Notes: generated by a model not told the origin, from the sequence alone. 63,872 nucleotides of DNA, filler included, from Reticulomyxa filosa (GCA_000512085.1; 20 parts of 20 records of this genome joined end to end with filler, not necessarily neighbours in it); one strand, 5' to 3'. Positions 1 through 58,299 are shown, numbered from the whole stretch's first letter. Translations and numbers: made by a program.

Positions 1-34
<34 letters not shown>
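1..34. repeat. (ATA)n microsatellite
   Basis: Perfect trinucleotide run at the window start. Confidence 0.9.
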
Positions 35-36
<2 letters not shown>

Positions 37-89
37 CATATGATGTCATCTTATTATCTTTTGGTGGATACCCAAGACATACATTACTA

Positions 90-2078
90 ATGAAATACAT
101 AAGTGTTTGGAGTGATATAGAAAATATTCAGAACGAACATAAAGAAAATCATGTCAATGAATGGATACCTTTTCTCAATGACAACAATGAACCAATTTCT
201 ATTGGCAGAGATAAAGATAATTATTTAGGATTGCGTGCAGTAATTAGTGGTAGCAATAATCATTTGTTGTTTATTTCACATTTTCCAAATAACATTAGTG
301 TATTCAATTTAAATACATTTCAATATGTGAAACATAGTATTTTACCTACAAATGATAATGACAGAATAAGATATCATTGTTTTGTATTGAGGGAATCATC
401 AAAAAAAAATACAAATCAAAAAATACATGAAATGATGTTATTTCACAAAAATACTGGATTATCCATTGAATACGATGAAAATTACAATATTTTTCAATTT
501 TATGGTGTACGAGTTTGTACAACTATGAGATCATTTTGTTGTTATGGATTTGTTTATATCGATGATTCTATTTTATTTTTTGGTGGATATGACGGAATAA
601 AAAATGCTTCAAGAGAAGTTTATCGATATTCAATTGTAGAAGATCAATGGGTAAAGTTTGAATCAATTCTACCCATGCCATTGAATTGTTGTATTGCAAC
701 ATTGAGTGGGGATAATAAATTTGTGCATGTTATTGGTGGTTATAATGAGCATGAGACTCTTTCTACACATATGAAAACAATATTGCAAAAATGGACAAGT
801 GAAATAGAAATAGAAAAGGAATGGATGAAGAAAGAAGAGGAAGATAGACATAACGAAGAAATAGAAAAAGGAGAAAAAGAAAAAAAGAAATTAAAATGAT
901 GAACGAAGAATTAAGCATGATGGGACAACAACAGCTCAATATACAGAAATTAAAAGTTAAAAATATGTGTATTATTCAATTATTTTCTTTGTCCACTATA
1001 ATAACATAAATAAATGAAAAGAGAACAAAAGAAATATCAATAATAATGAATTATTGGATTCGTTCATATTCAGTTAAAATAAAATGGATTGACGAATGTA
1101 ATGCTGTCATTGCAAGATATATTCTGGTATGTTAGAATTTTTTTGTTTAGCAATAATATTGAGAAAAAAAAAAAAAAAAGTTAATACATTTGTAATAGAG
1201 AAAATACTATCGACCTTTAACGATTCTTCAAAGACATCCTTCTTATGTACGCAATGTAAAATTTTCTCCAGATGGCTCTAAGATTGTTTTATGCTCAAAC
1301 AAGACAGTCAAAATATTGGATACTGCATCCGAAAAAAAAACTGGGATACTTAAAGGGCATTCAGATATTGTAAATGATGCACAATTTTCACCAGATGGAA
1401 ATATGGTTGTTTCATGTTCAGATGACAAAACCATTATATTATGGAATGAATCCTCACGTAAAAAGACAACCGAATTAAGAGGACATGAAGAGGCTGTAAC
1501 AACTGTCCAATTCTCATCAGATGGAAAAACAATTTTATCTTCTTCACATGATCAAACAATTCGAATATGGGATGTACATTCCGGACAAAAAGTAGTAATT
1601 TTAGAACAATTCAATAATATAACATATGCACAATTTTCACCTAATAATCAACAAATTATATCAGTATCCGATAATCGACCAATTGAAATTTGGGATGTAA
1701 CAAAACGTGAAATAATACTCACATTGGGTAAGAATACTCGACATGAACGTAAAGCAAAATTTTCATCAAATAGTCGTTTGGTTGTATCTTCAAAAACAAA
1801 AAAATATTATTATGGGATGCGATATCAGGAAAAAAAGTAAAACATTAGAAGGTCATTCTGATGCAGTAAATGATATGCAATTCTTTTCAGATAATCAAAC
1901 TCTTGTCTCATGTTCAATGGATAATACAATTCGATTGTGGGATGTGGAATTAGAAGTAGAAATACAAAAGTTGCAAGGCGATTCTGAAAACATAACTATG
2001 ATAGATGTTTCATCAAATGATAGTACAATTGTATCGATTTCTGAAAATGGAACAATTCAATTATGGGAGTCATTATGA
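90..2078 (+). CDS. Kelch-repeat plus WD40-repeat protein (5'-partial, multi-exon, homopolymer frameshifts; possibly a pseudogene)
   Basis: Kelch GG motifs (ILFFGGYDG, VHVIGGYN) in 90-899. A linker exon at ~1022-1126 reads EISIIMNYWIRSYSVKIKWIDECNAVIARYIL. WD40 repeats follow (GHSDIVNDAQFSPDG...DKTIILWN; DQTIRIWD; DNTIRLWD). GT..AG introns lie at ~956-1021 and ~1127-1198; frame breaks fall in A-runs at ~880 and ~1800. Confidence 0.8.
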
Positions 2079-3223
2079 AATTTTTTTATTTTAGACTTGT
2101 TCTCACTCTTCATTATTTGATGAAAAGATAACCAATAAACACATTTTTAAAACATTATTTCAAATACAAAATATATACTTACATAAAAACACTTTTTTGT
2201 GCACTAACGAACGTCATTTTCTGAATCTACAACTTCTAACTCTGCACAACATCGAAATTCTGTGCAAAGAGGAAATTCAATTTTGCCATATTATTACGCA
2301 ATATAGATTTATCAAACTTAATCAACATCAAGATCAACTCTCAAAAAAAATCTAAAATCAAACAAAAAATAAAGAACAAAATTTTTGTTCGAAAGTAATA
2401 ACAATAGAAAAAAATGAAAAAGTGAATTTTTGTGTCAGACAGCACACAAGCACGTCTTAACAAAAATTTAATTTTTTTTTAAATATAAACTCAAACTTTT
2501 CCAAAAAACAAAAAAACATGAAAGGATATTGCATATGTCGTTATAAACAAAATAAATGCTTTCTTATTGTTTGAATGCTCGAAAGCGGCAAGTAATAACA
2601 CAAAAGTCAATGTGGAACTATACTTGCAACATCAAGTCATGTTTTGATAGGAAAATGCATACAATGTACTTGGTAGCTTAGATATCGCTTGTTTTGTCTG
2701 ATGTATTGCCTTTTTTTTTGTAATATAAACAATATAGCTATTTTGATGTTATGTAAAAACAATAACAAAACAATCAAAGCGAAAAAAAATCAAATTTGCA
2801 AAGAAAAAAAAATTTTAAAAAATCAATAAGCAAAATAATAATGTTGTAGAAAATAATAAAATGTTTGTAATTGACAAAAAATTGTAGAAAAGATAAAATA
2901 CATTTTGAAACAGTTGAACCTTCTTATATATTTTAAAAAATGTTTATTTTGACTTAGAAAATTGATCATCCTCACATATGTCATTTAGTTTGTCATGACT
3001 TTTGTGCCTAAGATTGTATCGTTTTTCGGAACACCTTCCGATCTAAAGGAAAATATATATAATGATAGAATATCTACAATTGTGTATTTTTATTATGCAC
3101 GCGTCTGCTTGAATGTCCCAGTGACATTTTTTTTGCCAAGAAACCACACTTTTTTTTTTGAAGTTTGTGCCTGTTTGGAAAGGGAGGCAGAGAAATTGCA
3201 AATAAAACAAAAGGACATTGATC

Positions 3224-3470
3224 ATGACAGCAGGTCCTCGCTCAGCAAAAGCGGAATTGAAGCGCCTTGAGCAAGACAAAGCGCAATTAGAGGTGCGAGA
3301 GAAGAAGTTGAATGAGCTGGAACAAAAGCTGGGAGCGAAAAAGTTGCAACTAGAGAAGATGGAGAAAGAGTTGGTCGCGAAAGAGAAGATAGTAAAAAAT
3401 GCGGAAAAGAGGATAAACGAAAACCAACTCAAAACTGAAAAAGAAACAGTCAAATTATCACCACAAAACG
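3224..3470 (+). CDS. Coiled-coil protein, first exon (3'-truncated by contig end)
   Basis: MTAGPRSAKAELKRLEQDKAQLEVREKKLNELEQ has heptad character and is followed by AT-rich intron-like sequence. Confidence 0.5.
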
Positions 3471-4885
3471 TTTGTATAAAAAAAAAAGAAAAATATAAAT
3501 ATTTATGTATATGTTTATAAGTATTTAATACACAAATATTTCTTATTTGAATATGTACACATATATATATATATATATTTTTTTTTTTTAACTCTCAAAA
3601 AAAAAAAAANNNNNNNNNNNNNNNNNNNNNNNNNNNNNNNNNNNNNNNNNNNNTTAATTAATTAANNNNNNNNNNNNNNNNNNNNNNNNNNNNNNNNNNN
3701 NNNNNNNNNAGGTCTAACTCATAATAATAACTTTCAAATTCATCCCATGACCATTGAAGCTTTTTCTGAGTAGCTGTAATATCCTTTATTTATGTTAGTG
3801 TTCTCAAATGTCCTCTTTGTCATTATCGATATTTTAATATCTTTGCTTGTTGTTTCACTTAACTCGGATAATTTTGCGCGCTTTGAAGGGACAATATCCT
3901 AAACGATCTTGAATGAAGAATGTCAGTGTGTCTTGCTACAGTCATATACAACTACATTTGTTCTTGTTAATTCAATATAATTTTAAAAACAAAAAAAAGC
4001 GAAACTCGTAGTTTCTGTCTTTGTCCAGTTGCGTCTAATCTCACAAAATATTTGCGATCTCTTTCTTCACGGTTAGGGAGATCGTAACCTTTGCTGAATT
4101 TACGGATATTTTCAATTAAGACAGAAGGTTGGATAGATACTCAAAAAAAAATGTGTATAAAAACATAAGCACTGTTATGACGTCACTTGCAAGTACAGTA
4201 TATTAATTGAATAAAATATTGCTTATTAAATTTAATTTCCATTATACAGTCTTCTAAATAATTCGTAAAGAAAAATTGAGCTAATTCAAAAGAATAACAT
4301 TTATTGCCCAAATGGAATGGCTATTGATTTTGTTTAGTCGTATGTCTAGATTAACATAACATTTCGCATGAGTACATTTCGAAATATATTTTTTCCCGTA
4401 ATATATCACATAGTGTTGTGATTAAATATTTTAATTGATTTGTAAAGTATTTAATTGAATTGTATTAGATTTTATTTAAATAAAATATATTGAATTATTA
4501 TCTAAAATATTTTAAAATAAAGTTTAAATACTTGAAATAAGTATAAAATTTCTTGTAGAGCAATTTTAAAGATTCGAAGCATTCATTGCAATAACAAAAT
4601 TTTTGTTTTTAGAAGAGAAATTATTATGACAATCGTTTCGATATTGCTTGTATGATTGACGATTAGGAAGGCAGTAAAATTTGCATTTGAATTTCTGCAA
4701 ATTTACTACATGAAAATTTTGGTGTTATCTTTTAAGTTATATTTATACCATTTTGCATTGCTTAAGATATTACTTAAAAAGTTTATAAAGACCAGAAGCA
4801 CTTAGCAGTCCCTTAAGAAAAAAGAGGGAGCAGCCCAATACATATTTTCAAGTAATAATATTCTCTTTTGAGTTTAGGTGAAGCC

Positions 4886-6007
4886 ATGAATGGCCTAAAC
4901 TGTGTAAAAGGTGAAATACATAATGTATTAGCAGTATTGCGGATAAGTGGACGATCTCGATCGGGACTGTTTAACTTTTCGATAAATGGAGGAACTGACG
5001 ACAATTTGGAAACCCTGAGAAATAAATTGGTAGTATCTTTTAAAGAATTGCATGCGTGTTTGGGACTTCAGAGTTCATTGAAAGATATTGACACGTGTGT
5101 GTGGCTGCAGCCATTTATCGATTTGATATTGTCTGACATCAAAGGTGTAGATGTGATGAACATGACATTGTCTGCCATTCACAAATTTCTGTTGTATTCT
5201 CTGCTCGACGAAGAGTCTCCCAACGTCTGTCAAGCGTTGCATGAAATCCTGAATGCCGTGATCCATGCCAAATTTGACCGTATGTAACTTTGCAATGGCA
5301 TATCAATTCCACGCTGTTTAATCAGTGGCCATATGGGGGTATTGAATGTGTGTATGTATATGTGTGTAATGTAGGACACTCGAGAAGCGAAGAAGAGTTA
5401 GTATCGATTCGAAGCATGGAAGTGTTATTGGAAATACTGCGATGTCCCGCAGGGTATATGTTATCTGACGACGACGTGTGTGGGATTATCCAACACGTGT
5501 TTGAAATGCGGTTGTATCACGCCTCGAATCACAGCGTGTTAATGGTGCGCTACATCGAAAATGCATTAATCCAAATGATCATATTGATCTTCAGCGAACT
5601 AGTCGACGAAGATATTTGGAGTGCCAATTATCACTCCTTGCTCGAAGCCAAAAAGCAAAGCCAAACAAAGGCCACGGACACGAACAAAAGATTTCCGTAT
5701 TATCACGCGAGTGGCATGATCCAACCCTTTGGACATCGACGACGAATACAAAAGATGTGTTTGCAAGACGCCGATCCCACGAATCCCACGACAATGGAAA
5801 AGAGAGTGGAGAGGAAAGTGGATGAGTTTCGGCATGACCGCCACGCATATCCAAAGATGGCAATGGAAGAGATAGCCGAAGAAAAAGTGAAGGAAAAGCA
5901 GTCTTCGTCCGACCGTAATTCCTTTGAGACAAAAGAATTGCAAACACAAATACAAACTCAAACTCAAGCTCAAGTTCAAACTCAAACACAAACTCAAACA
6001 CAAACAC
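4886..6007 (+). CDS. GBF1: GBF1/GNOM-like large ARF guanine-nucleotide exchange factor, N-terminal DCB region (3'-truncated)
   Basis: VKGEIHNVLAVLR, WLQPFIDLILSD...TLSAIHKFLLY and EILRCPAGYMLSDDDVCGIIQ match GBF1-family N-terminal motifs. An in-frame GT..AG intron lies at 5280-5374. Confidence 0.75.
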
Positions 6008-49123: not shown

Positions 49124-50170
49124 TTTGTTTAATTTGTAAACAAATTGCCAATGATCAAGACCTAAATGAGTCATTGATTATTGGAGAAAGCTGTTTAACA
49201 ATTTCATAATGCGAACCATCAATATTCTAAAAGTAAATCTTTGCAATTACTTATTGGCTAATTAATGGTAATATGTCCACGACAATTTGAAAGAGATTTA
49301 CAAACATCTGATCAATATCAATAACAAGAAGGAGAAACATCGGGAATGATTTTGTATGATTTCAAAGGTACTATTCTTTTTTTTATTTCTGCTTTATGGA
49401 GAGAAAACCACTAAAAGGATATGGAGTTATCAATTTGCCATTATTGAGCAAAAGCGTAAAAAATATCACGTCAAAATATAAGAGATGTTTTCACTGATAA
49501 ATGTTACAAAAGTAATTTTACATTCTTAGAAAAGTCTAAAATATGTTTGTGAAGTGAATTAATCCACTCCCTGATCCATACTCCATATACGATTTACATA
49601 TCCAGCAAAAGTCTTGATTAATTTGGCAGAACGAAATAAATCAAATTTACAATTATTATCATTGATATATTTCTTTTGTCCATTGGATGAATTATTTTTC
49701 TTTTTCAATGAACTATTTTTTCATTAATTCAAAGTCAGCACGATGTTTAAGCAATTCTTGTTCATATTTCTTTATTTCATTATCTTTTCTTTGCACTTTC
49801 AATTTCAATTTTTCATTTTTAACTTTAGTTGACGTATTTCTTCTAATTATTTGTTTGGAGGTTTTCAGGTAACAGAAGGATAGAGTATTTAAACTAAAAA
49901 CATCTCTGCGAATTTGACTCAAGTATTTTTTTTTCTTAATTCAATTTTGACAAATAATTTGACTTTCTTGCTCTTCCAAAGAATATAAGAAAATAACTTG
50001 AGACCATTACCGGAACCATCTTTTTTCATTATTTTTTAGATCTTGATTAAATGGTACAAACTCAAAAGAATATATCACATCATTATCATCAAACCCTTTG
50101 ATCTCGTGTAATTGTTTGTTAGTTCGAATGTACCAAAATCGAATCGTATTGTCAATTGGTCCAGAACATT
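49124..50170 (-). pseudogene. Decayed WD40/coiled-coil family gene fragments
   Basis: The minus strand reads FDLFRSAKLIKTFAGYVNRIWSMD (~49575-49650), carries a coiled coil at 49713-49922, and a TIR.FW.IRTNKQLHEIKG WD-like remnant at ~50100-50150, all broken by stops. Confidence 0.55.
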
Positions 50171-50271
50171 ATCAAAGAATATCAGTTTCCACAAGGAAAA
50201 AAGGAGAATAATCGACAAATGCAATTGGAAAAGGACTGTTTTGTAGTTGACTGTGCTTTTTTACGTCAAAC

Positions 50272-50299
50272 CGTATGGCACAAAAACTTAGATTTAAAA
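50272..50299 (+). repeat. 28-bp inverted repeat, left arm (pairs with 52777-52804)
   Basis: CGTATGGCACAAAAACTTAGATTTAAAA versus the reverse complement of 52777-52804, CGTATGGCACAGAAACCTAAATTTAAAA: 25/28 identical. Confidence 0.85.
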
Positions 50300-50417
50300 G
50301 TCCACTGTTTGACAAAAAACTGACAAATATTTTTTCAATTTAAAGTAAAGATCTGCAGTCGAGTTTAACAGTCGGTATTTTGTATCAGTTAGTCAAGTGA
50401 AATCGTCATTAGAAAAG

Positions 50418-51490
50418 ATGAGTGCCAGCAGCTTCAACCTCGTTGCGCTTGAAAAATTCGCAACAAGGATATTTGTTGCACGAGTATCTTTTTCATTGCG
50501 GAAACCATAAAGATAGCTACAATTTGTGCGTGAGGTACGAAAAGGCGGCCAGGCTCAAATGTAAAAAAATTGTCTATCATAAAGTACTCTTATCACAAAG
50601 TCATGAAGATGAGATTAACAATTCATCCTCCACAATTCATCAATTAAATTTGTTCACAGACCAAGACAACGCTACATTGACCAACAAACAAAAAACAAGC
50701 ACTAGTAACACACAAGACATTGGCAGCAACGCAACGGGAAACGAATGTAAAGTATTGTTCATGTACACAAACTACTGCTCGGCCACCGGCAAGTACTTTT
50801 ATTCAGTAGCTGCAGATAGTTGCACAACCACGCAATTTCGGCAACAGTGCGGTCCCCAACACTCATATATACTTCTAAATTTCAACCAAGTCGCATATAA
50901 ATGCAACTGAAAAAGCTTCTTAACCATCGACACTCTTCGACGACTCGTCAGTATCACCCATTCAGATTTACTGTGCATTAGACCACTGTACATTTTCGAT
51001 ACAAAACAAAATTATATAAAAATAGATCAAAATCAAGTCACAGCATCAATTGGGTACACACAGTGGATGCAGTGCATAAATGTCCAATAACGTTTTTCAC
51101 CCATTCTCGTCCAACTTGCAAGTGACTAGCAAGATGATTGCGCCGTTGTGCGAAAAGACAATTAGGGGATACAATGCATTATTTTTCACCTATGGGCAAA
51201 CGGGGACAGGTAAATCTTTCTCCATTTATGGCGATCCAGAGAGTCTCGGAAGCCAACATAATGCCATTCTTACATTCGCCATCAAATATTTATTGTCCAA
51301 CAAAGCTGCAACAGAGACCATATTATCATTATCGGCGGTGGAAATATATGACACCAATCCGGCCAGAGCACAATGCTTTGATCTCATCCTTCCAGCGAAT
51401 CTTGAGGCATCCACATGTGATAACAAAATTGCGTTGCAAGATATTAACCAATGCAAGCCACATTTTGTATTGACAATAACACAAAATGAC
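50418..51490 (+). pseudogene. Decayed paralog of the retrotransposon zinc-finger/kinesin ORF
   Basis: Shares the ATGAGTGCC start, EYLFHCGNH...YNLCV, PLYIFDTKQNYIKID...TASIGYT and CEKTIRGYNALFFTYGQTGTGKSFSIYGD with 56112-58178. It has frameshifts and stops and lacks switch II onward. Confidence 0.85.
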
Positions 51491-52776
51491 GAAGAATATT
51501 TAATATATTTTTGATATTTGTATTATCTATTGAATAATTACAAAAAAAAAACTGGTTGTATATGTTTACAAAATTTTCTGAATCGAATTTGCGACAAAGT
51601 CAAAAATATTTGAAAGAAAATAATTTTCAGTGTGAATCCACTCAAATTGACATAAGAACAGTCAATATAAACATATTAGATAATGCAAGAATTGCATTGA
51701 CTTGCTTAATGTTTCGTTTCAAGAACAAACATTATTGATACAAATGATAAATTTGATCCAAAAATCAAAAATGAAGATAAGTTAAAAAGCGAATACGAGT
51801 TGTTGATCGAAAATCTTGCGGATAACGTAGAAAATTGCGACGAAATCAAAGACTATGTGTCACTGATTTTTGTTTCTAACTTGTACAAAGAAATTTGTAT
51901 ATATTATTAATTTACTTCATTATTTGATTTTAATACTTTATAATTATTTATTATAACGAAGTAATATTAATTTTGTTGACTAGATTGTACAAATTAGAAG
52001 CTATTCATTATGGACAGTTACAAAAGTATTTATACTAATGGCATATCAAATATTGTATCTGTACTTTGTAAAATAATTAAGTACAAACTAAATTAAAAAA
52101 AGAAAAAGTTTAAATAAAACAAAAGAAATAAAAATTAAAACAAAAATATATATGAAACAATTCAAATTTAGTATTGACAAGTGAAAATTTATATGCAGAA
52201 ATTATATAGTAAATGTGAATATTTGATTATGCTATAGCATTTGTAATAAATGAAATTATATTCAGCGCTAGTGATGACCTAAATCAGATAACAATCATGA
52301 CAATGATAACAGCAATGCATGTGATTGCAATTATTATAATAATATAATTAAATAAAAATTTTCTTTTGTATTAGTCGTTATATTCTTTTGGCATTTTAGG
52401 TATTCTAGTTGTTCTAAGATCGACATTTTTTTTTTTGGAATAGAACTGCAATAGCGCACTTGAAATTTCATATACTTTAACATAGTATTTTTCAAATCTC
52501 TTTCTTTTTATTAAATAGTTTTTCAAATAGATGAAGTTTTTTAGTATGATCCTAAGTTTATGTTCTTTGAATTAAATAACATAGTAATTATATACAGGAC
52601 ATAACAATTTGTACACGTATCCTTGAAAGCACTTTTTTTTAAAATAGATTTATTGCAAAAAAAAAAACTCAGGACCCAGGTAAAACAAATTTGTCGAATC
52701 CTTAAAACCAATTTTTTATGATGTAGAAAATTAAAATTGAAGATACATAAAGTTTATTAAAAAAATGACGTTATAT

Positions 52777-52804
52777 TTTTAAATTTAGGTTTCTGTGCCA
52801 TACG
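52777..52804 (-). repeat. 28-bp inverted repeat, right arm
   Basis: See 50272-50299. AAAC lies immediately outside both arms (50268-50271 and 52805-52808). Confidence 0.85.
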
Positions 52805-52824
52805 AAACCTTATTCTTGTGTGAA

Positions 52825-52882
52825 ACAAATTCCAAAAGGGCGCTGTCAAATTTTTTTTTATGAAATCAAACGAGAATGCGAA
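52825..52882 (+). repeat. 58-bp direct repeat, copy 1 (3' flank of the retroelement)
   Basis: ACAAATTCCAAAAGGGCGCTGTCAAATTTTTTTTTATGAAATCAAACGAGAATGCGAA; 55/58 identical to 58242-58299. Confidence 0.95.
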
Positions 52883-53103
52883 CGGTTTTTTTAAATTTCC
52901 TATGGATTTTTCTGCAGAAAAAAAATTTGTCGATGTTTTTAAAAACGCAAAATTTAATTTATTAAATAAATTGAAAGAGTTGATGGGTGTGAAAGCACAC
53001 TTTAACAAAATATTTTAGCACTTTTTATTTTGGGAAATTTTAATTGAAAGTTTTATTTTTGAATTGTTGTTGTTTGTAGAATATGTGTGCCAGGTGTTGA
53101 TAG

Positions 53104-56100
53104 TTATCTGCAATGAGACCAAATGGATATCGCGTTGGCCTTTTGGAGAGCTACGCTTACTTTTTGGAAAATTGTCTTGCGCGCATTTTGCTCTGTTCTG
53201 TTTTCTTTGTCAGCTAGTGTCTTGGCTACCTTGTTGAAGAATTCTATGGCTACTTTATGCCAGCCACCTGTAGTTTCGGCAATTAGCGGGACGTATGATA
53301 TACCTTGGTCTATGCACTTTTGCAATGATTTGTTGTTTTTTCGGTCATAGTATTGCTCTTCTGCATGGAGTTCATTGGTGTAGTTGTTTGCGATGTGTGC
53401 ATGAGTTATTCCAACGTCGAATAACGTGAGGTCATTGGGATCGTCGAACCATTTTAAACCGAAATCTCCGGGGCGTTCATTGTTGTTGGCATCGATTTTG
53501 AGCTCTCGCCTGTGATGTAGTTCCGCACGCTTGAGAATGTTTGTGATGCATGCGACGACTTTATCGTGGCGGGCTATTCTGCCTTTACCATGAATGCATG
53601 TCAATGCGTGGTCTCCGTGTTGATCCATCTTGTGCTCACATGATCCTCCGCCGTGGCATTTTTCGTCGACCGATACAACTAATGATAATCTTAGTCGAGT
53701 GATGGTTTGGAACTCTATGTTATCAAGCATTGTGCGCGAATATTTGTTTGGGGGGGCTTGTAAGAATGCAGACGAGTGTTTGGTGGATAATGCGGTGAGC
53801 ATAGCTCGCGTACGATGGTTGGCGTTGGATGTGAATGTGTGAGTTGCATTGATTGATATGCTTTTGGATAATGATGCTTGTGTTGGGATGGTGGTGATTG
53901 ATCTGATGTTGTGAGCTTCCTTGGTGAGTGAATTGTAATGGGCTATTGCGTTGTCGAGTTCTTGTGTGTCTGTCCACTGGGAAATGTTTGTGTTTCTGTG
54001 GATAGTTGATATGATTGGAGTGGCTGCCGTGACGGAGGCGATGAAGGAGGCGCTAGCATAGTTGCCGATGGTGCGCAAACCGAAACCCCCATACTTGAGT
54101 GGAAGTTGGCATTGTTGCCAGTTTGAATCGGTGAGTGGGCGGCCGATGATTGTTTCCATACAGCTGCGAATCTTGTTGTCGAACTTGAATGCCCATCGAT
54201 GTCTTGGGTCTGCAAAGCTGGCTCGCAGGAAATAATTTGCTTTGGATATATTCAATGAATGGCGGAGGAGGAGCAAGGACGATTGATAGTGTTGGAGTTT
54301 GTTTAGGTTGTTAAGTTGTGTGTCCAACTCCTTTGACTTCTTTTCCATTTGTTCTTGTTTGAAATTATCGTCGCCAATGGGAACGCTGACGATTGACGTG
54401 TTGAAAGTGGTATTATGTGGGATTAAATTGAAGGCTGTCGGCGGTGGTGTGTCTCTTGACGAGATCCATTCACATTTTCGCAAATTCATGTGGAGGCCAT
54501 GCGAATGTTCCATAGCCGATAGCATGGTGAGTGCGCGCGTCAAGGTTTGTGCTGAGTCGGCTGCCAATGTCAAATCGTCATGGTAGGCTGCGAAATAAAG
54601 ATTTGGCAGGTCAACGAAGGAAATATCCATAGCGTCGGCAAGGACGATGGCAAATAGAGCACTACCAAGAGGGTCCCCTTGATGGACACCGGTGCGAGAT
54701 TGGATTACTTGGCCATTTGGAAGAAAAAGCGGGGAATGCTTTGCATAGCATCCGTGTACGTAACCAATGAGTTCCGGTAAGTGCGATTCTACTAATTGTA
54801 TTAGCTTTGATCTCTTCACTCTGTTGAATGCATTTTGAAAGTCGATTTTTATCGCTGCGGCACCAGGTGTGCGTTTCGTATGAGCTAGCACCGCTTTGAA
54901 CCCATGCGAAAAATGTTCGATGCCTGCGTTGACGTTTATGCCCGACTGGTGTAGACCGACAATTGACTTGATTTTTTCACCGTATCTTGACATTAAGGTG
55001 GCAGCTGCGGAGCGACGCAGCAGTGAACCGATTGCGATGGGCCTGGGGGATCCGTCCGGCTTTGGGATAGCGATAAGCCTTGCACCGTAAGCGATTGGTG
55101 TTGCTGCTTCGCAGGTGTCCCCGTGGCAAATCAAATTGGCAACTTTTGCCCATAACGTGATTACATCCGATTCCGCTTGGTACGGTACAAGATCAATCAG
55201 CAGCTGTGCGGAAAAAAGGTCCGTGCCTCCAGAGGATGATCTCCCCAGTTTTTTGATGTACTTTTGGATGTCTTCTTCTGTGATGGGCTTGCACAATCGC
55301 TTACGTTGAGCAGAAGGTGGGGGGATTTCTATGGGGGTTTCGTCAGGATGTTTAGATCTCAATGTGTCAATAACCTCCTGACTGTATAGCATGGGCGATG
55401 AGGGCGATAGCGATTGAAATGCCTTGGAGTACTCTCCAAGTGAAACGAGGTTGAGGCAACGATTTTGGCAATTGGCTTCGCTTTTGTTCTTTGGTGGTAG
55501 GTCTTCTGATGCTTCCAGTTTTTCGGAATGCACAATGAACTCACGCCAAAGTTCGGTAAATGAACCGTCTCTCCATTTTTGAAATCTCTTCTTTAAGACT
55601 GAAGAAAGTGCATTGATGTGCGCCTTCCCCCCTCTGTCGGGTGACCATAGGAGCAAGCGGGTGAGTAGCATCCATTTGGACCAAGCAGTGTCGTTGTTAT
55701 TGTAGGCAACCTCTCGCAGGCATGATGCTGCAACTGACGCGAAAGTGGACCGAACGGCGCGCGGGATTCTGGTGATGATTTTGGCAGGCAGCGTTGCTAC
55801 GTCGAAGGTTGTTGGCCAACACCATGTGGAAGCGGTGATGGGAGCGTGCAGATTGGCGTTATGCGTGTATACAGCGGTACGGTGCTGAATGTCTTCGCTG
55901 TATTTTTGCTCGTCCGAAAGTAATGTGGGGACTTGAGGGGCATTCGCTTGGTACGTGGATCTTTGTTGGAGCCACAGGCGGCAATGCTTGTGCAAGCCAT
56001 CACGGATCCACTTGGCGGCGGATATATTTCTGCAGTGCGTACACACCTTTCTGTCGTACTGCTGGAAGTACGATTGCGGAATTTCGGAGTGCGGGTCATC

Positions 56101-56430
56101 CACATGCGAGTTCACGTGTTTGTGCAGCGAGGATTCGGCTGAATACACCGAATGGCAATTTGGAACTGGACAGGCAAAATGGGTGGCAGTTTTCCGACTG
56201 GCTTGGTGGTTGCAGGGGACTGCGTCAGGGTCAATGTCGAAGTCTGCTGCGTCGGCGACCGAGGTGGTGTCGTGTACGTGAGGATTGATTGGAATCTGTT
56301 TGGTGTCGGACTGAGACACGAGTGGACCAACGAGGTGTGGCGCGATTGCGTGCGTGTTGGCAGTGGCTGCAGCACTGTTGGTAACGCGTGTTTCTGGTGG
56401 CTGTTTTGTTGAAGGTGTATCTTTTGTCTG
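53104..56430 (-). CDS. Non-LTR retrotransposon protein: C2H2 zinc finger, reverse transcriptase, CCHC knuckle, restriction-like endonuclease (CRE-like)
   Basis: CPVPNC...LHKHVNSH; RLIAIPKPDGSPRPIAIG; KIDFQNAFNRV; GVHQGDPLG; AAYHDDLTL; LPLKYGGFGLR; CEHKMDQHGDHALTC; RHDKV; RPGD...FDV; K...K; PLIAETTGGW; ALQKANA. The frame is open from 56430, and the listed start at 56319 is GTG. Confidence 0.95.
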   Translation of the reverse strand, partial: QTKDTPSTKQPPETRVTNSAAATANTHAIAPHLVGPLVSQSDTKQIPINPHVHDTTSVADAADFDIDPDAVPCNHQASRKTATHFACPVPNCHSVYSAESSLHKHVNSHVDDPHSEIPQSYFQQYDRKVCTHCRNISAAKWIRDGLHKHCRLWLQQRSTYQANAPQVPTLLSDEQKYSEDIQHRTAVYTHNANLHAPITASTWCWPTTFDVATLPAKIITRIPRAVRSTFASVAASCLREVAYNNNDTAWSKWMLLTRLLLWSPDRGGKAHINALSSVLKKRFQKWRDGSFTELWREFIVHSEKLEASEDLPPKNKSEANCQNRCLNLVSLGEYSKAFQSLSPSSPMLYSQEVIDTLRSKHPDETPIEIPPPSAQRKRLCKPITEEDIQKYIKKLGRSSSGGTDLFSAQLLIDLVPYQAESDVITLWAKVANLICHGDTCEAATPIAYGARLIAIPKPDGSPRPIAIGSLLRRSAAATLMSRYGEKIKSIVGLHQSGINVNAGIEHFSHGFKAVLAHTKRTPGAAAIKIDFQNAFNRVKRSKLIQLVESHLPELIGYVHGCYAKHSPLFLPNGQVIQSRTGVHQGDPLGSALFAIVLADAMDISFVDLPNLYFAAYHDDLTLAADSAQTLTRALTMLSAMEHSHGLHMNLRKCEWISSRDTPPPTAFNLIPHNTTFNTSIVSVPIGDDNFKQEQMEKKSKELDTQLNNLNKLQHYQSSLLLLRHSLNISKANYFLRASFADPRHRWAFKFDNKIRSCMETIIGRPLTDSNWQQCQLPLKYGGFGLRTIGNYASASFIASVTAATPIISTIHRNTNISQWTDTQELDNAIAHYNSLTKEAHNIRSITTIPTQASLSKSISINATHTFTSNANHRTRAMLTALSTKHSSAFLQAPPNKYSRTMLDNIEFQTITRLRLSLVVSVDEKCHGGGSCEHKMDQHGDHALTCIHGKGRIARHDKVVACITNILKRAELHHRRELKIDANNNERPGDFGLKWFDDPNDLTLFDVGITHAHIANNYTNELHAEEQYYDRKNNKSLQKCIDQGISYVPLIAETTGGWHKVAIEFFNKVAKTLADKENRTEQNARKTIFQKVSVALQKANAISIWSHCR

Positions 56431-58178
56431 TTAGTTTGCGCGGGGGCCTCATCAGGGGTGACAGCAGTTGGGCTGTTTTTTGTGTTTGAGCTTCTCGCGT
56501 TAGTAGGATGTTGATTTGACTGGATGGTTGACCTGTCCGGGGTAAGTTGGATGCCCCCTGCAGTCGCGGCAAATTTCAAAGTACTATCAGTGGAGGAGGC
56601 GTCCTGCGTACTCAATGAGATTGTGCATAACACGGAGATAAGCGATGAGGTGTTGAAGAGTGGGTAGATGAGCTTTCTTAACCCGGTGCCTCTATCGGGG
56701 CCCAACTTACCTTTGGCGCGAATTTCTTGGAATGACAAATACAATTGGTGGACAGTGTTACTTGTGTATGGTGTCTCCGGCTTGCTTTTGTAGGATGTTG
56801 GCCTTTGAGTATGTGTCGGTGGGGGAGGCAATTTGGGTGGGGTTTCGCCGCTGAAGCTGGCCAAATCGATGATGATGAACTTGCTAACCAGTTGGTTCGA
56901 CTTGCCGGTGTCTTTATCGAATGATTGGGTCAGCGTTATTGTGAAGATGACATGTCCCCGCGAAGGTAGCGAATCTGTGGCAGTAAGCGTCGCGCGCGAT
57001 GTATCCCTTAACTGCTGGACCAGTTCCACTAAATTCGTTTGTTTGGTGATTACAAGGGGTGATGTGTCGGTAGGGCGGGTGGGTGCTACCGAGCGATTGT
57101 TTTCGCTAGGGCTTGTATCAAACGAGCAATGTTTCAATAAATCCGTTGTTCGCGCTTTGAGTGGATCAGGATCGAATAGCTGGAGTGCCTCTAGTGTTAA
57201 TTGTGTGGTGACCGCTACCGTGTTGTGTAATAGGAAATCGAGGACGTATACCAAAAAGGCGCTTTGCTGACTGTCGGGGTGAGAGTGGTCTCCGTATAAC
57301 GAGAACGATTTCCCGGTGCCAGTTCTTCCATATGCGAAAAGTAAGGCGTTATACCCTCGCAACACTTTCTCACACGATTGTTTTAGGATGTGGTCGCTTG
57401 CTTCCCGGTTGGTGACTTCGGGTTGGAAAACTCGATTGAAAGTATACGTATCGCCACCACTTAAGGTGTATCCGATTGATGTCGTGACGTTCTCGTTGTC
57501 GAATTTAATATATCTCTGGTTCGAATCGAAGATGGATGGAGGCTTGACCTGGATTGGTGATGAAACTACTGGTGCCATGCTATCTGGTGGGGGACTGGTC
57601 CATGGTTTTGATGGTGGGATCCGGTTTCCGATGTCTGCAAAAGGTGTTCTAATTGGCATTGTCTCGGATAGTGCCTGCGCGCCTTGGATTTTTCCTGTAT
57701 TGTCTTCATGCATTTGTTTAGACAATGTTGTTTCTTTGCATGGACTGAGGTTCCTTTTTTGAACCGACGTACACTTATTGCTGTCGGGGGGCATTTTTTC
57801 AGCTTTTTCAAAGGTTGTGAGCAAGTTTTCGGGCTCGATTGCGACACTCGATGAGTTGTTGTCGTTTCTTTGTACTTGTTGACTGACTTCCTCAAGCGCT
57901 AACCACGGTTGAGGAACTTGTTTCCGCGACGCGCTTTCGCAAACAACACAAATGTCGTAACCACCATTATGCCCTCCGCAATGAAATAAATAGTCTTGCG
58001 CGTTAATATCTTTGTTGCAACTGTCACAAATGGCCACTTCTTCGAGCCGATAGTTGTAAACATGGTTCGCACGAACAAATATCATAACGTTCTTACAGCC
58101 ATTGAATCCGCAAGTTCTGTACCCACTCTCATTTTTGGTTGTCCACAAATGACCGCTTTTGCCGTTTGCGGCACTCAT
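56112..58178 (-). CDS. Zinc-finger + divergent kinesin motor domain protein (ORF1 or N-terminal half of the retroelement protein)
   Basis: YTFNRVF, VLRGYNALLFAYGRTGTGKSFS (P-loop), SRGHVIFTI (switch I-like), KFIIIDLAS (switch II-like) and STLKFA (alpha6). The N-terminus has CGFNGC / CDSC / HC..H..YDICVVC. The first ATG is at 58178. Confidence 0.9.
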   Translation of the reverse strand: MSAANGKSGHLWTTKNESGYRTCGFNGCKNVMIFVRANHVYNYRLEEVAICDSCNKDINAQDYLFHCGGHNGGYDICVVCESASRKQVPQPWLALEEVSQQVQRNDNNSSSVAIEPENLLTTFEKAEKMPPDSNKCTSVQKRNLSPCKETTLSKQMHEDNTGKIQGAQALSETMPIRTPFADIGNRIPPSKPWTSPPPDSMAPVVSSPIQVKPPSIFDSNQRYIKFDNENVTTSIGYTLSGGDTYTFNRVFQPEVTNREASDHILKQSCEKVLRGYNALLFAYGRTGTGKSFSLYGDHSHPDSQQSAFLVYVLDFLLHNTVAVTTQLTLEALQLFDPDPLKARTTDLLKHCSFDTSPSENNRSVAPTRPTDTSPLVITKQTNLVELVQQLRDTSRATLTATDSLPSRGHVIFTITLTQSFDKDTGKSNQLVSKFIIIDLASFSGETPPKLPPPPTHTQRPTSYKSKPETPYTSNTVHQLYLSFQEIRAKGKLGPDRGTGLRKLIYPLFNTSSLISVLCTISLSTQDASSTDSTLKFAATAGGIQLTPDRSTIQSNQHPTNARSSNTKNSPTAVTPDEAPAQTNRQKIHLQQNSHQKHALPTVLQPLPTRTQSRHTSLVHSCLSPTPNRFQSILTYTTPPRSPTQQTSTLTLTQSPATTKPVGKLPPILPVQFQIAIRCIQPNPRCTNT

Positions 58179-58241
58179 ATCGTACAATGCTGTACTCCTG
58201 GATCGGGCTGCAGTTGTTTTTCACAATAACTTTATATTTAT

Positions 58242-58299
58242 ACAAATCCCAAAAAGGCGCTGTCAAATTTTTTTGTATGAAATCAAACGAGAATGCGAA
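58242..58299 (+). repeat. 58-bp direct repeat, copy 2 (5' flank; contig ends here)
   Basis: ACAAATCCCAAAAAGGCGCTGTCAAATTTTTTTGTATGAAATCAAACGAGAATGCGAA. Confidence 0.95.

Follow-up and report, generated by a model that had tools for sequence, protein, structure and literature searches.

A foraminiferal R2/CRE-type retrotransposon family whose predicted polyprotein begins with a kinesin motor-like domain

Introduction

The non-long terminal repeat (non-LTR) retrotransposons that bear a restriction-like endonuclease (RLE), such as R2, R4, NeSL, CRE/SLACS/CZAR, Hero and Utopia, encode a single polyprotein with an N-terminal C2H2 zinc finger, a reverse transcriptase (RT) with the YxDD signature, and a C-terminal CCHC motif combined with a PD-(D/E)xK endonuclease. 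Here we describe an element of the foraminifer Reticulomyxa filosa (GCA_000512085.1), situated on the minus strand between positions 52825 and 58299 of a 63,872-nucleotide stretch of joined genome records (the window), which likewise appears to derive from a single polyprotein of this kind, has the domain order of CRE1, SLACS and CZAR from trypanosomatids, and encodes a kinesin motor-like domain upstream of these parts.

Retroelements and retroviruses reach the nucleus by recruiting host motors. The present element appears itself to encode an RT-fused, kinesin-derived head, which is thus encoded, not recruited, and kept by selection, and it offers a natural, testable case of a transposon gaining a cytoskeletal interface in an organism noted for the speed of its microtubule transport. 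In the open-access literature searched, a scope that does not take in the R. filosa genome paper or Repbase, we found no retrotransposon described with a kinesin domain. An earlier note on this DNA, made from the sequence alone, had presented the locus as a retrotransposon that captured a host kinesin. The linkage of kinesin and RT is a real feature and extends from this one locus to a family; the functional claim we soften, on the state of the catalytic motifs, from a motor to what is probably a microtubule tether.

A kinesin motor-like domain and an RLE-type retrotransposon in one unit

The piece of the window around the element (49124-58299) is 21-30% GC, and a block at ~53100-58200 stands out with 44-54% GC, in agreement with the GC-richer block of the earlier note. 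Two long frames traverse this block on the minus strand, one from the ATG at 58178 to 56112 (688 amino acids (aa); open from 58187) and the other from 56319 to 53104 (1071 aa; open from 56430, giving 1108 codons). Their principal features are as follows:

56112..58178, minus strand: first reading frame, 688 aa, with an N-terminal region, the kinesin-like domain and a linker continuing out of frame to the stop
56469..57530, minus strand: kinesin motor-like domain, aa 217-570 (Pfam, PDB profile matches, AF2, Foldseek)
57306..57329, minus strand: P-loop GRTGTGKS, aa 284-291, which fits GxxxxGK[ST] (alignments)
56844..56867, minus strand: switch II position, DLASFSGE against DLAGSEGE in the family, i.e., Gly to Ser and Glu to Ser (alignment)
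53104..56430, minus strand: second reading frame, 1108 open codons, with a DIDxDAVP motif, C2H2, RT, CCHC and RLE
56089..56172, minus strand: C2H2 zinc finger, aa 50-77 of the second frame (Cys/His columns invariant in six sequences)
54460..55068, minus strand: RT core, aa 418-620, with DFQNAF and YHDD (Pfam RVT_1)
53329..53658, minus strand: CCHC motif and RLE with RHD, PGD, D and K (motifs)

In the first frame Pfam recovers the Kinesin domain PF00225 (E 1.3e-25; 90.5 bits against a cutoff of 29.3) together with Microtub_bd (E 1.6e-10), which upholds the claim that an overlapping 5′ open reading frame (ORF) on the same strand carries a kinesin fold. A profile of the element-borne domains matches the motor domains of KIF4, kinesin-1 and Eg5 in the PDB (E ~2e-24), and the AlphaFold2 (AF2) model of residues 217-570, computed from a 48-sequence alignment, attains a mean predicted local distance difference test (pLDDT) score of 84.9 and a predicted template modelling (pTM) score of 0.85. 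When this model is compared to the PDB with Foldseek, the best 50 matches listed are all kinesin motor domains, with template modelling (TM) scores of 0.59-0.75, those of the top matches lying at 0.64-0.74. According to the model, the first frame thus holds a whole-domain kinesin motor fold. The matches listed for a protein search with the kinesin ORF were all distant cellular kinesins and did not include the R. filosa relatives described below, probably owing to a limit on candidates; a search restricted to the motor region returned no matches. We found no nucleic-acid-binding signature, of RRM or CCHC type, in the kinesin-like domain.

The second frame yields a match to RVT_1 (E 6e-19), and a feature-database search gives generic RT clusters only. 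A single C2H2 finger lies upstream of the RT and is conserved in all relatives, and nine RLE columns are invariant across six diverged sequences (R917, H918, D919, P950, G951, D952, D968, K994 and K997). The RLE region matches that of R2Bm locally, at a level that is not significant alone, and the RLE is hence identified at the level of motifs. Among solved structures the R2 proteins 8gh6, 9nl3 and 8ibw are the sole sequence matches of the RT frame; among the RLE groups the element may belong to CRE, as the earlier note proposed, or to NeSL, R2, R4, Hero or Utopia. Judged by its domain order and motifs, the block is an RLE-bearing, R2-group non-LTR retrotransposon, and the C2H2, RT, CCHC and RLE motifs reported in the earlier note were all located in the second frame, with a 58-bp repeat on the flanks. 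A search of the piece with Rfam (E up to 1) recognised no rRNA, spliced leader (SL) or snRNA target beside the element.

The linkage recurs in diverged copies

Relatives were collected by a protein search with the RT frame, which returned R. filosa proteins of 41-45% identity, followed by tblastn on the fetched R. filosa contigs. Two of the annotated proteins, RFI_29435 and "kinesin family member 4, partial", combine PF00225 with PF00078. On the contigs, a kinesin-like domain followed in one frame by C2H2, RT and RLE is encoded at five further loci:

L001, ASPP01002760: frameshifts; contig end A12
L002, ASPP01025516: single intact ORF of 1828 aa, nt 11-5497
L006, ASPP01029371: kinesin-RT order in one frame
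L008, ASPP01034136: decayed member of the L002 subfamily (84-95% aa identity to L002), carrying one deletion and broken in frame at several points
L009, ASPP01026273: closest relative of the window copy; motor of 43.6% identity, then C2H2 in the same frame

Including the window copy, the linkage is thus seen at six loci from at least four diverged lineages. The earlier note had looked to other insertions for co-occurrence of the kinesin and RT parts, and had named a linkage unique to this locus or a chimeric assembly as what would speak against its claim; the shared order in five further contigs, the single 1828-aa ORF of L002 and the monophyly of the element kinesins point the other way. With L008 as a decayed member of the L002 subfamily and an A12 run at the end of contig L001, the unit is multicopy and decays in the manner of a mobile element.

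The window contains one more instance, the seventh and a partial one, ~1.3 kb past the 3′ side of the main copy and in the opposite orientation:

50479..51514, plus strand: decayed 5′ fragment of a related kinesin-type element (tblastn, Pfam)

This fragment comprises a Cys/His region and the first ~40% of the motor, i.e., the P-loop half with a canonical GQTGTGKS, and lacks an RT. It is 40.6% identical to aa 238-360 of the main copy (tblastn), scores E 1.2e-15 with the Pfam Kinesin model, shares 72% nucleotide identity with L009, groups with the window copy and L009 in the kinesin tree, and contains one frameshift and a premature stop. Its truncation at the 3′ end is unusual for a non-LTR element, and it may be a remnant left by deletion.

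Three further elements (L003, L004 and L005; X-type) share the C2H2-RT-RLE body and have another N-terminal module, which is ~720 aa long and contains a coiled coil, so that the kinesin is part of the element, as earlier claimed, in the six loci and not in these relatives. BLAST, Pfam and hhalign reveal no relation of the X-type module to kinesin; a reading of it as a degenerate kinesin was rejected (hhalign probability 0.1%). In L003:1926-2089 and L004:1210-1334, 21-nt tandem repeats encode heptad-like NIQQM(E/Q)S units, which fall in the region of Pfam coiled-coil-like matches, at the position that the kinesin-like domain occupies in the other lineage. Upstream of the motor, the N-terminal regions have no similarity detectable between lineages.

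A probable single ancestral polyprotein, split in the window copy

Relative to the first frame, the second is shifted by -1 and lacks an ATG ahead of its conserved N-terminal motifs, the DIDxDAVP motif and the C2H2 finger both lying upstream of any ATG in that frame. The offset must fall in a short linker stretch:

56295..56430, minus strand: linker that must hold the -1 offset, with two A4 runs at 56425 and 56407

The ORF of L009 is continuous through this junction, matching the first frame of the window copy to just past the motor and the second from DIDxDAVP onward, and L002, L003 and L005 are single ORFs of ~1826-1828 aa. We reread the two-ORF structure as a broken polyprotein, because L002 has one ORF and L009 reads through the junction: most likely, to judge from these relatives, the two overlapping ORFs are one ancestral polyprotein split by a copy-specific 1-nt frame offset in the linker, of which either a 1-nt deletion by mutation or an assembly error could be the source. 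A programmed -1 frameshift was considered and rejected, as the ORF overlap has no canonical slippery heptamer (X XXY YYZ) and the relatives have one ORF. Accordingly, the RT/RLE frame is open for more than 1100 codons, as the earlier note held, and its further suggestion of a young copy is not established, because with a copy-specific frame offset the window copy is not evidently intact.

Origin and co-inheritance of the kinesin-like domain

When 1.84 billion representatives were searched with a profile, the R. filosa element proteins ranked first, followed by a distinct set of divergent kinesins, mostly a few hundred residues long, which outscores ordinary kinesins with the element profile and whose named members come from the foraminifera Bolivina argentea and Nonionella stella. 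Pfam recognises a kinesin domain only, with no RT, in four members of this family (P0081, P0082, P0084 and P0089). A tree of 59 motor domains groups the six element domains in a single clade with a Shimodaira-Hasegawa-like approximate likelihood ratio test (SH-aLRT) value of 98, nested in a 100-supported clade of the divergent family (including the Bolivina and Nonionella members) and apart from kinesin-5 and other canonical motors. The element domains and the divergent family share derived motifs, namely SSRGH at switch I, DxAGSEGE with an insertion after switch II, G.GLRR.L.P in place of YRDSKLT, and TESTLKFA. The tree and motifs support a single capture of the domain from a divergent kinesin family that includes foraminiferal proteins; the capture of a host kinesin had been the inference of the earlier note.

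Two RT trees, the second rooted on metagenomic outgroups, recover a foraminiferal clade with support of 99-100, in which the window copy and L009 branch first, L001 next (support 83), and then a 98-supported group of L002, L008 and L006. The X-type RT clade (100) is nested within the last group, leaving the kinesin-type elements as a basal grade. For tree building only, X was placed across frame breaks in L001, L008 and the outgroups and at the single in-frame stop of L009. The topology of the RT agrees with that of the kinesin domain, which means that the domain was captured once and then co-inherited, and that the X-type lineage later exchanged its N-terminal module. A kinesin-like domain is present in none of 70 distant metagenome RT relatives (at most 28% identity).

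Purifying selection and the state of the catalytic motifs

The earlier note had singled out the kinesin part for a comparison of nonsynonymous and synonymous substitution rates (dN/dS) among copies. By the Nei-Gojobori method, L002 against L008 (dS ~0.26-0.43) gives the following ratios:

Kinesin-like domain (263 codons): 0.147
C2H2 to pre-RT: 0.15
RT: 0.05
RLE part: 0.09
Linker: 0.43
N-terminus: 0.45

The estimates for this pair place the kinesin-like domain under purifying selection. In this pair the constraint is independent of ATP binding, because the L002/L008 lineage is selected yet lacks the P-loop.

The P-loop is intact in the window copy, the neighbouring fragment (GQTGTGKS), L009 and L001, and is lost in L002 and L006; switch I (SRGH) agrees with the parent family in the window copy, L009 and L001. 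The canonical switch II DxxGxE (DLAGSE) occurs in no element copy:

Window copy: DLASFSGE
L009: DLASSEGE
L001: DCAWAGN
L002: DLVCEL
L006: NLVGET
Parent family: D[LC]AGSEG, seen in five of the six members aligned, the sixth (P0084) reading DSGGCDGE

The switch II Gly is substituted in the window copy, L009, L001 and L002, whereas L006 retains it and lacks the Asp and Glu; the window copy has lost the Glu as well. The helix and loop motifs downstream of switch II, common to the element copies and the parent kinesin family, are still recognisable. These motifs form the microtubule-facing surface of kinesin, and mutants of kinesin-1 in which the switch II Gly or Glu is replaced keep microtubule binding and lose ATP hydrolysis and motility.

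Proposed role and alternative explanations

We posit that these loci represent a family of RLE (R2/CRE-type) non-LTR retrotransposons of Foraminifera that would encode a single polyprotein of ~1800 aa, comprising a kinesin motor-like domain, a linker, C2H2, RT, CCHC and RLE. The kinesin domain was captured once and has since been inherited together with the RT under purifying selection, and in the window copy a 1-nt offset in the linker, by mutation or assembly error, most likely splits the polyprotein into two overlapping frames. The conserved role is likely to be an ATP-independent or rigor-like binding of microtubules, by which the protein/RNA complex of the element would be tethered to, or positioned on, the microtubule network of the cell, and would not walk along it. 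Where the earlier note let the kinesin tether or move the ribonucleoprotein (RNP), a tether fits better and movement is disfavoured, because no copy has a canonical switch II and one lineage, though selected, has no P-loop left. This explanation as a whole, i.e., a kinesin-headed foraminiferal RLE element with a single capture, selection and a microtubule-tether role, we hold to be likely. Several points weigh against it: only ~6 loci are seen, all on short contigs; the window copy is frame-broken and may be dead; the contig ends within the upstream copy of the 58-nt repeat; two of the trees, that of the kinesins and the second RT tree, come from quick, unbootstrapped searches, with some backbone nodes at 83-84; and the estimate of selection comes from the single pair L002/L008, over 263 codons, in a lineage without the P-loop. 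We offer more tentatively, as an attractive possibility that we would stop short of calling likely, that the retrotransposon encodes its own cytoskeleton-engaging module, its kinesin head binding microtubules and thereby placing or carrying the RNP to the nuclei of a giant multinucleate foraminifer; the head would be rigor-like in most lineages and possibly still nucleotide-regulated in the type of the window copy and L009.

Other functions of the domain have to be weighed against the tether. An active motor that hydrolyses ATP, walks and carries the RNP along microtubules would agree with the full motor fold, predicted with high confidence, and with the P-loop of the window copy, the second fragment, L009 and L001 and their switch I, where it is as in the parent family. 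We regard this as unlikely, since the switch II Gly is substituted in four copies and L006 is without the Asp and Glu, the window copy lacks the switch II Glu, the P-loop has disappeared wholly from L002 and L006 under continued selection, and kinesin-1 mutants at these switch II residues are immotile and bind microtubules nonetheless. Selection for a different role (for example oligomerisation, targeting to the spindle or chromatin, or the chaperoning of RNA or the RNP in lieu of an ORF1 protein) is somewhat less improbable, if still doubtful: selection does persist without the P-loop, and the unrelated coiled-coil module of the X-type sisters at the same position suggests a generic accessory role, but the post-switch-II helix and loop motifs of the parent family, which face the microtubule, are recognisably kept, and a nucleic-acid-binding signature is not found.

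The remaining alternatives deny the domain a function in the element, or deny the element itself. Transposable elements do take up host fragments, and the decay of the catalytic motifs might suggest a neutral passenger, a captured gene fragment of no use to the element; however, the domain is kept across an RT divergence to ~45% aa identity, co-diverges with the RT, preserves its full fold, and has a dN/dS of 0.15 against 0.43-0.45 in the neighbouring linker and N-terminus, which makes a passenger very unlikely. We give slightly less credence still to the notion that the kinesin-RT fusions are domesticated host genes, not mobile elements. NCBI does annotate them as genes (e.g., 'kinesin family member 4, partial'), but the RT and RLE catalytic motifs are intact, L001 and L008 are multiply frameshifted, the window holds a truncated fragment and L001 ends in A12; further, the flanks differ between copies and contigs break at the ends of the unit. 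Least credible of all is a chance adjacency or chimeric assembly, in which an RT element would sit beside or within a host kinesin gene. High fragmentation of the assembly and the different frames of the two parts in the window speak for it, but it is refuted by the same arrangement in five further contigs of diverged lineages, including the single ORF of L002, and by the monophyly of the element kinesins; the RT frame, moreover, has a conserved N-terminus without a start codon of its own.

Element ends, flanking sequences and gene annotation

The remaining features of the window copy are its flanking repeats, untranslated regions and a possible N-terminal finger:

52825..52882: downstream copy of a 58-nt direct repeat
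58242..58299: upstream copy of this repeat, truncated at the contig end; 95% identical to 52825-52882
58179..58241, minus strand: leader (5′ untranslated region and/or flank) between the repeat and the ATG; the first ~25 nt AT-rich, then GC-rich
52883..53103, minus strand: 3′ untranslated region, AT-rich
57909..58031, minus strand: ZZ-type zinc-finger-like Cys/His cluster, aa 50-90 (weak; Pfam ZZ E 0.021, under the cutoff)

The ZZ-like cluster is partly kept in the second kinesin-type fragment at 50479-51514. The 58-bp direct repeat that had been noted around both ORFs is indeed there, with 55 of 58 positions identical, and 58 nt is a minimum length, as the upstream copy runs into the contig end. 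It could be a target duplication of at least 58 bp, a repeat of the host, or the 3′ terminus of a tandem copy lying upstream. SLACS makes a long target duplication of 49 bp, with which a duplication of at least 58 bp would fit. The three mismatches fit poorly with stop-free frames if the duplication arose at insertion, and we do not call the repeat a target-site duplication, given these differences (3/58 positions) and the truncation of one copy at the contig end. The 58-mer has no match elsewhere, and the R. filosa contigs show no terminal repeats resembling it.

The contigs L003 and L004 stop at the same base, both ending AAATTCTAYTT, and the ends of L002 map to L008:460 and L008:5503. Contigs of one subfamily thus share their end points, and breaks in the assembly probably fell on repeat boundaries or close to them. 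Downstream of the window element, AT-rich non-coding sequence at 52689-52752 is 88-92% identical to L008:1-153 around a 93-nt gap, and the L008 stretch sits upstream of a copy from a different subfamily; it represents either a dispersed host repeat or a common insertion neighbourhood. L006 begins with a telomere-like heptamer repeat, (AGCCCTA)n at L006:1-63, and its element may be subtelomeric. The repeat is followed by an open frame of 1109 codons without a Pfam match (L006:315-3641), which shares ~115 nt, read in a different frame, with the beginning of the kinesin-RT ORF.

The NCBI gene models over L001, L002, L005, L006 and L009 are spliced, and the locus does not translate to the product. 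These models are probably annotation artefacts over transposon ORFs that inflate kinesin gene counts; copies of this element account for at least five annotated R. filosa "genes" with kinesin-type domains. That kinesin-domain genes are amplified in R. filosa is a result of its genome paper, as reported in a later paper of the same group (PMC4758236). A part of this expansion may be transposon copies.

Comparison with known systems

The closest cellular counterparts of the kinesin head are the divergent kinesins (e.g., P0084 and P0099 of Bolivina argentea, P0125 of Nonionella stella, and many from transcript-sized contigs), which have the same motor fold and family motifs and are stand-alone proteins, of 500-1016 aa in the six examined. 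All six aligned members display a canonical GQTGSGK[TS] P-loop and, with the exception of P0084, D[LC]AGSEG at switch II, in contrast to the degenerate switch II of the element copies and, in one lineage, their P-loop. The element lineages constitute a natural experiment, in which a kinesin head evolves into a likely ATPase-dead binding module.

The maize Ab10 meiotic-drive kinesins KINDR and TRKIN are a precedent for a selfish element that exploits microtubules by its own kinesin-derived protein (PMC7462060). Unlike the head described here, KINDR and TRKIN are kinesin-14 genes in their own right, located on a drive haplotype; they move knob DNA on the spindle and are not fused to the RT of a transposon. 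In its position, a non-enzymatic accessory module upstream of the RT, the kinesin-like domain resembles L1 ORF1p and similar proteins, and the X-type sisters have their coiled-coil module there; it differs from ORF1p in its cytoskeletal-motor origin and in being without an RRM- or CCHC-type nucleic-acid-binding signature.

Against CRE1, SLACS and CZAR, the repeat copies in the window differ at 3/58 positions, one is cut by the contig end, and a spliced-leader gene was not detected beside the element. With respect to R2 and the other RLE elements, the window element has ~750 extra N-terminal residues that include the kinesin motor-like domain and, if its head does place or carry the RNP along microtubules, no other transposable element would have preceded it in having a transport domain of its own that stems from a motor.

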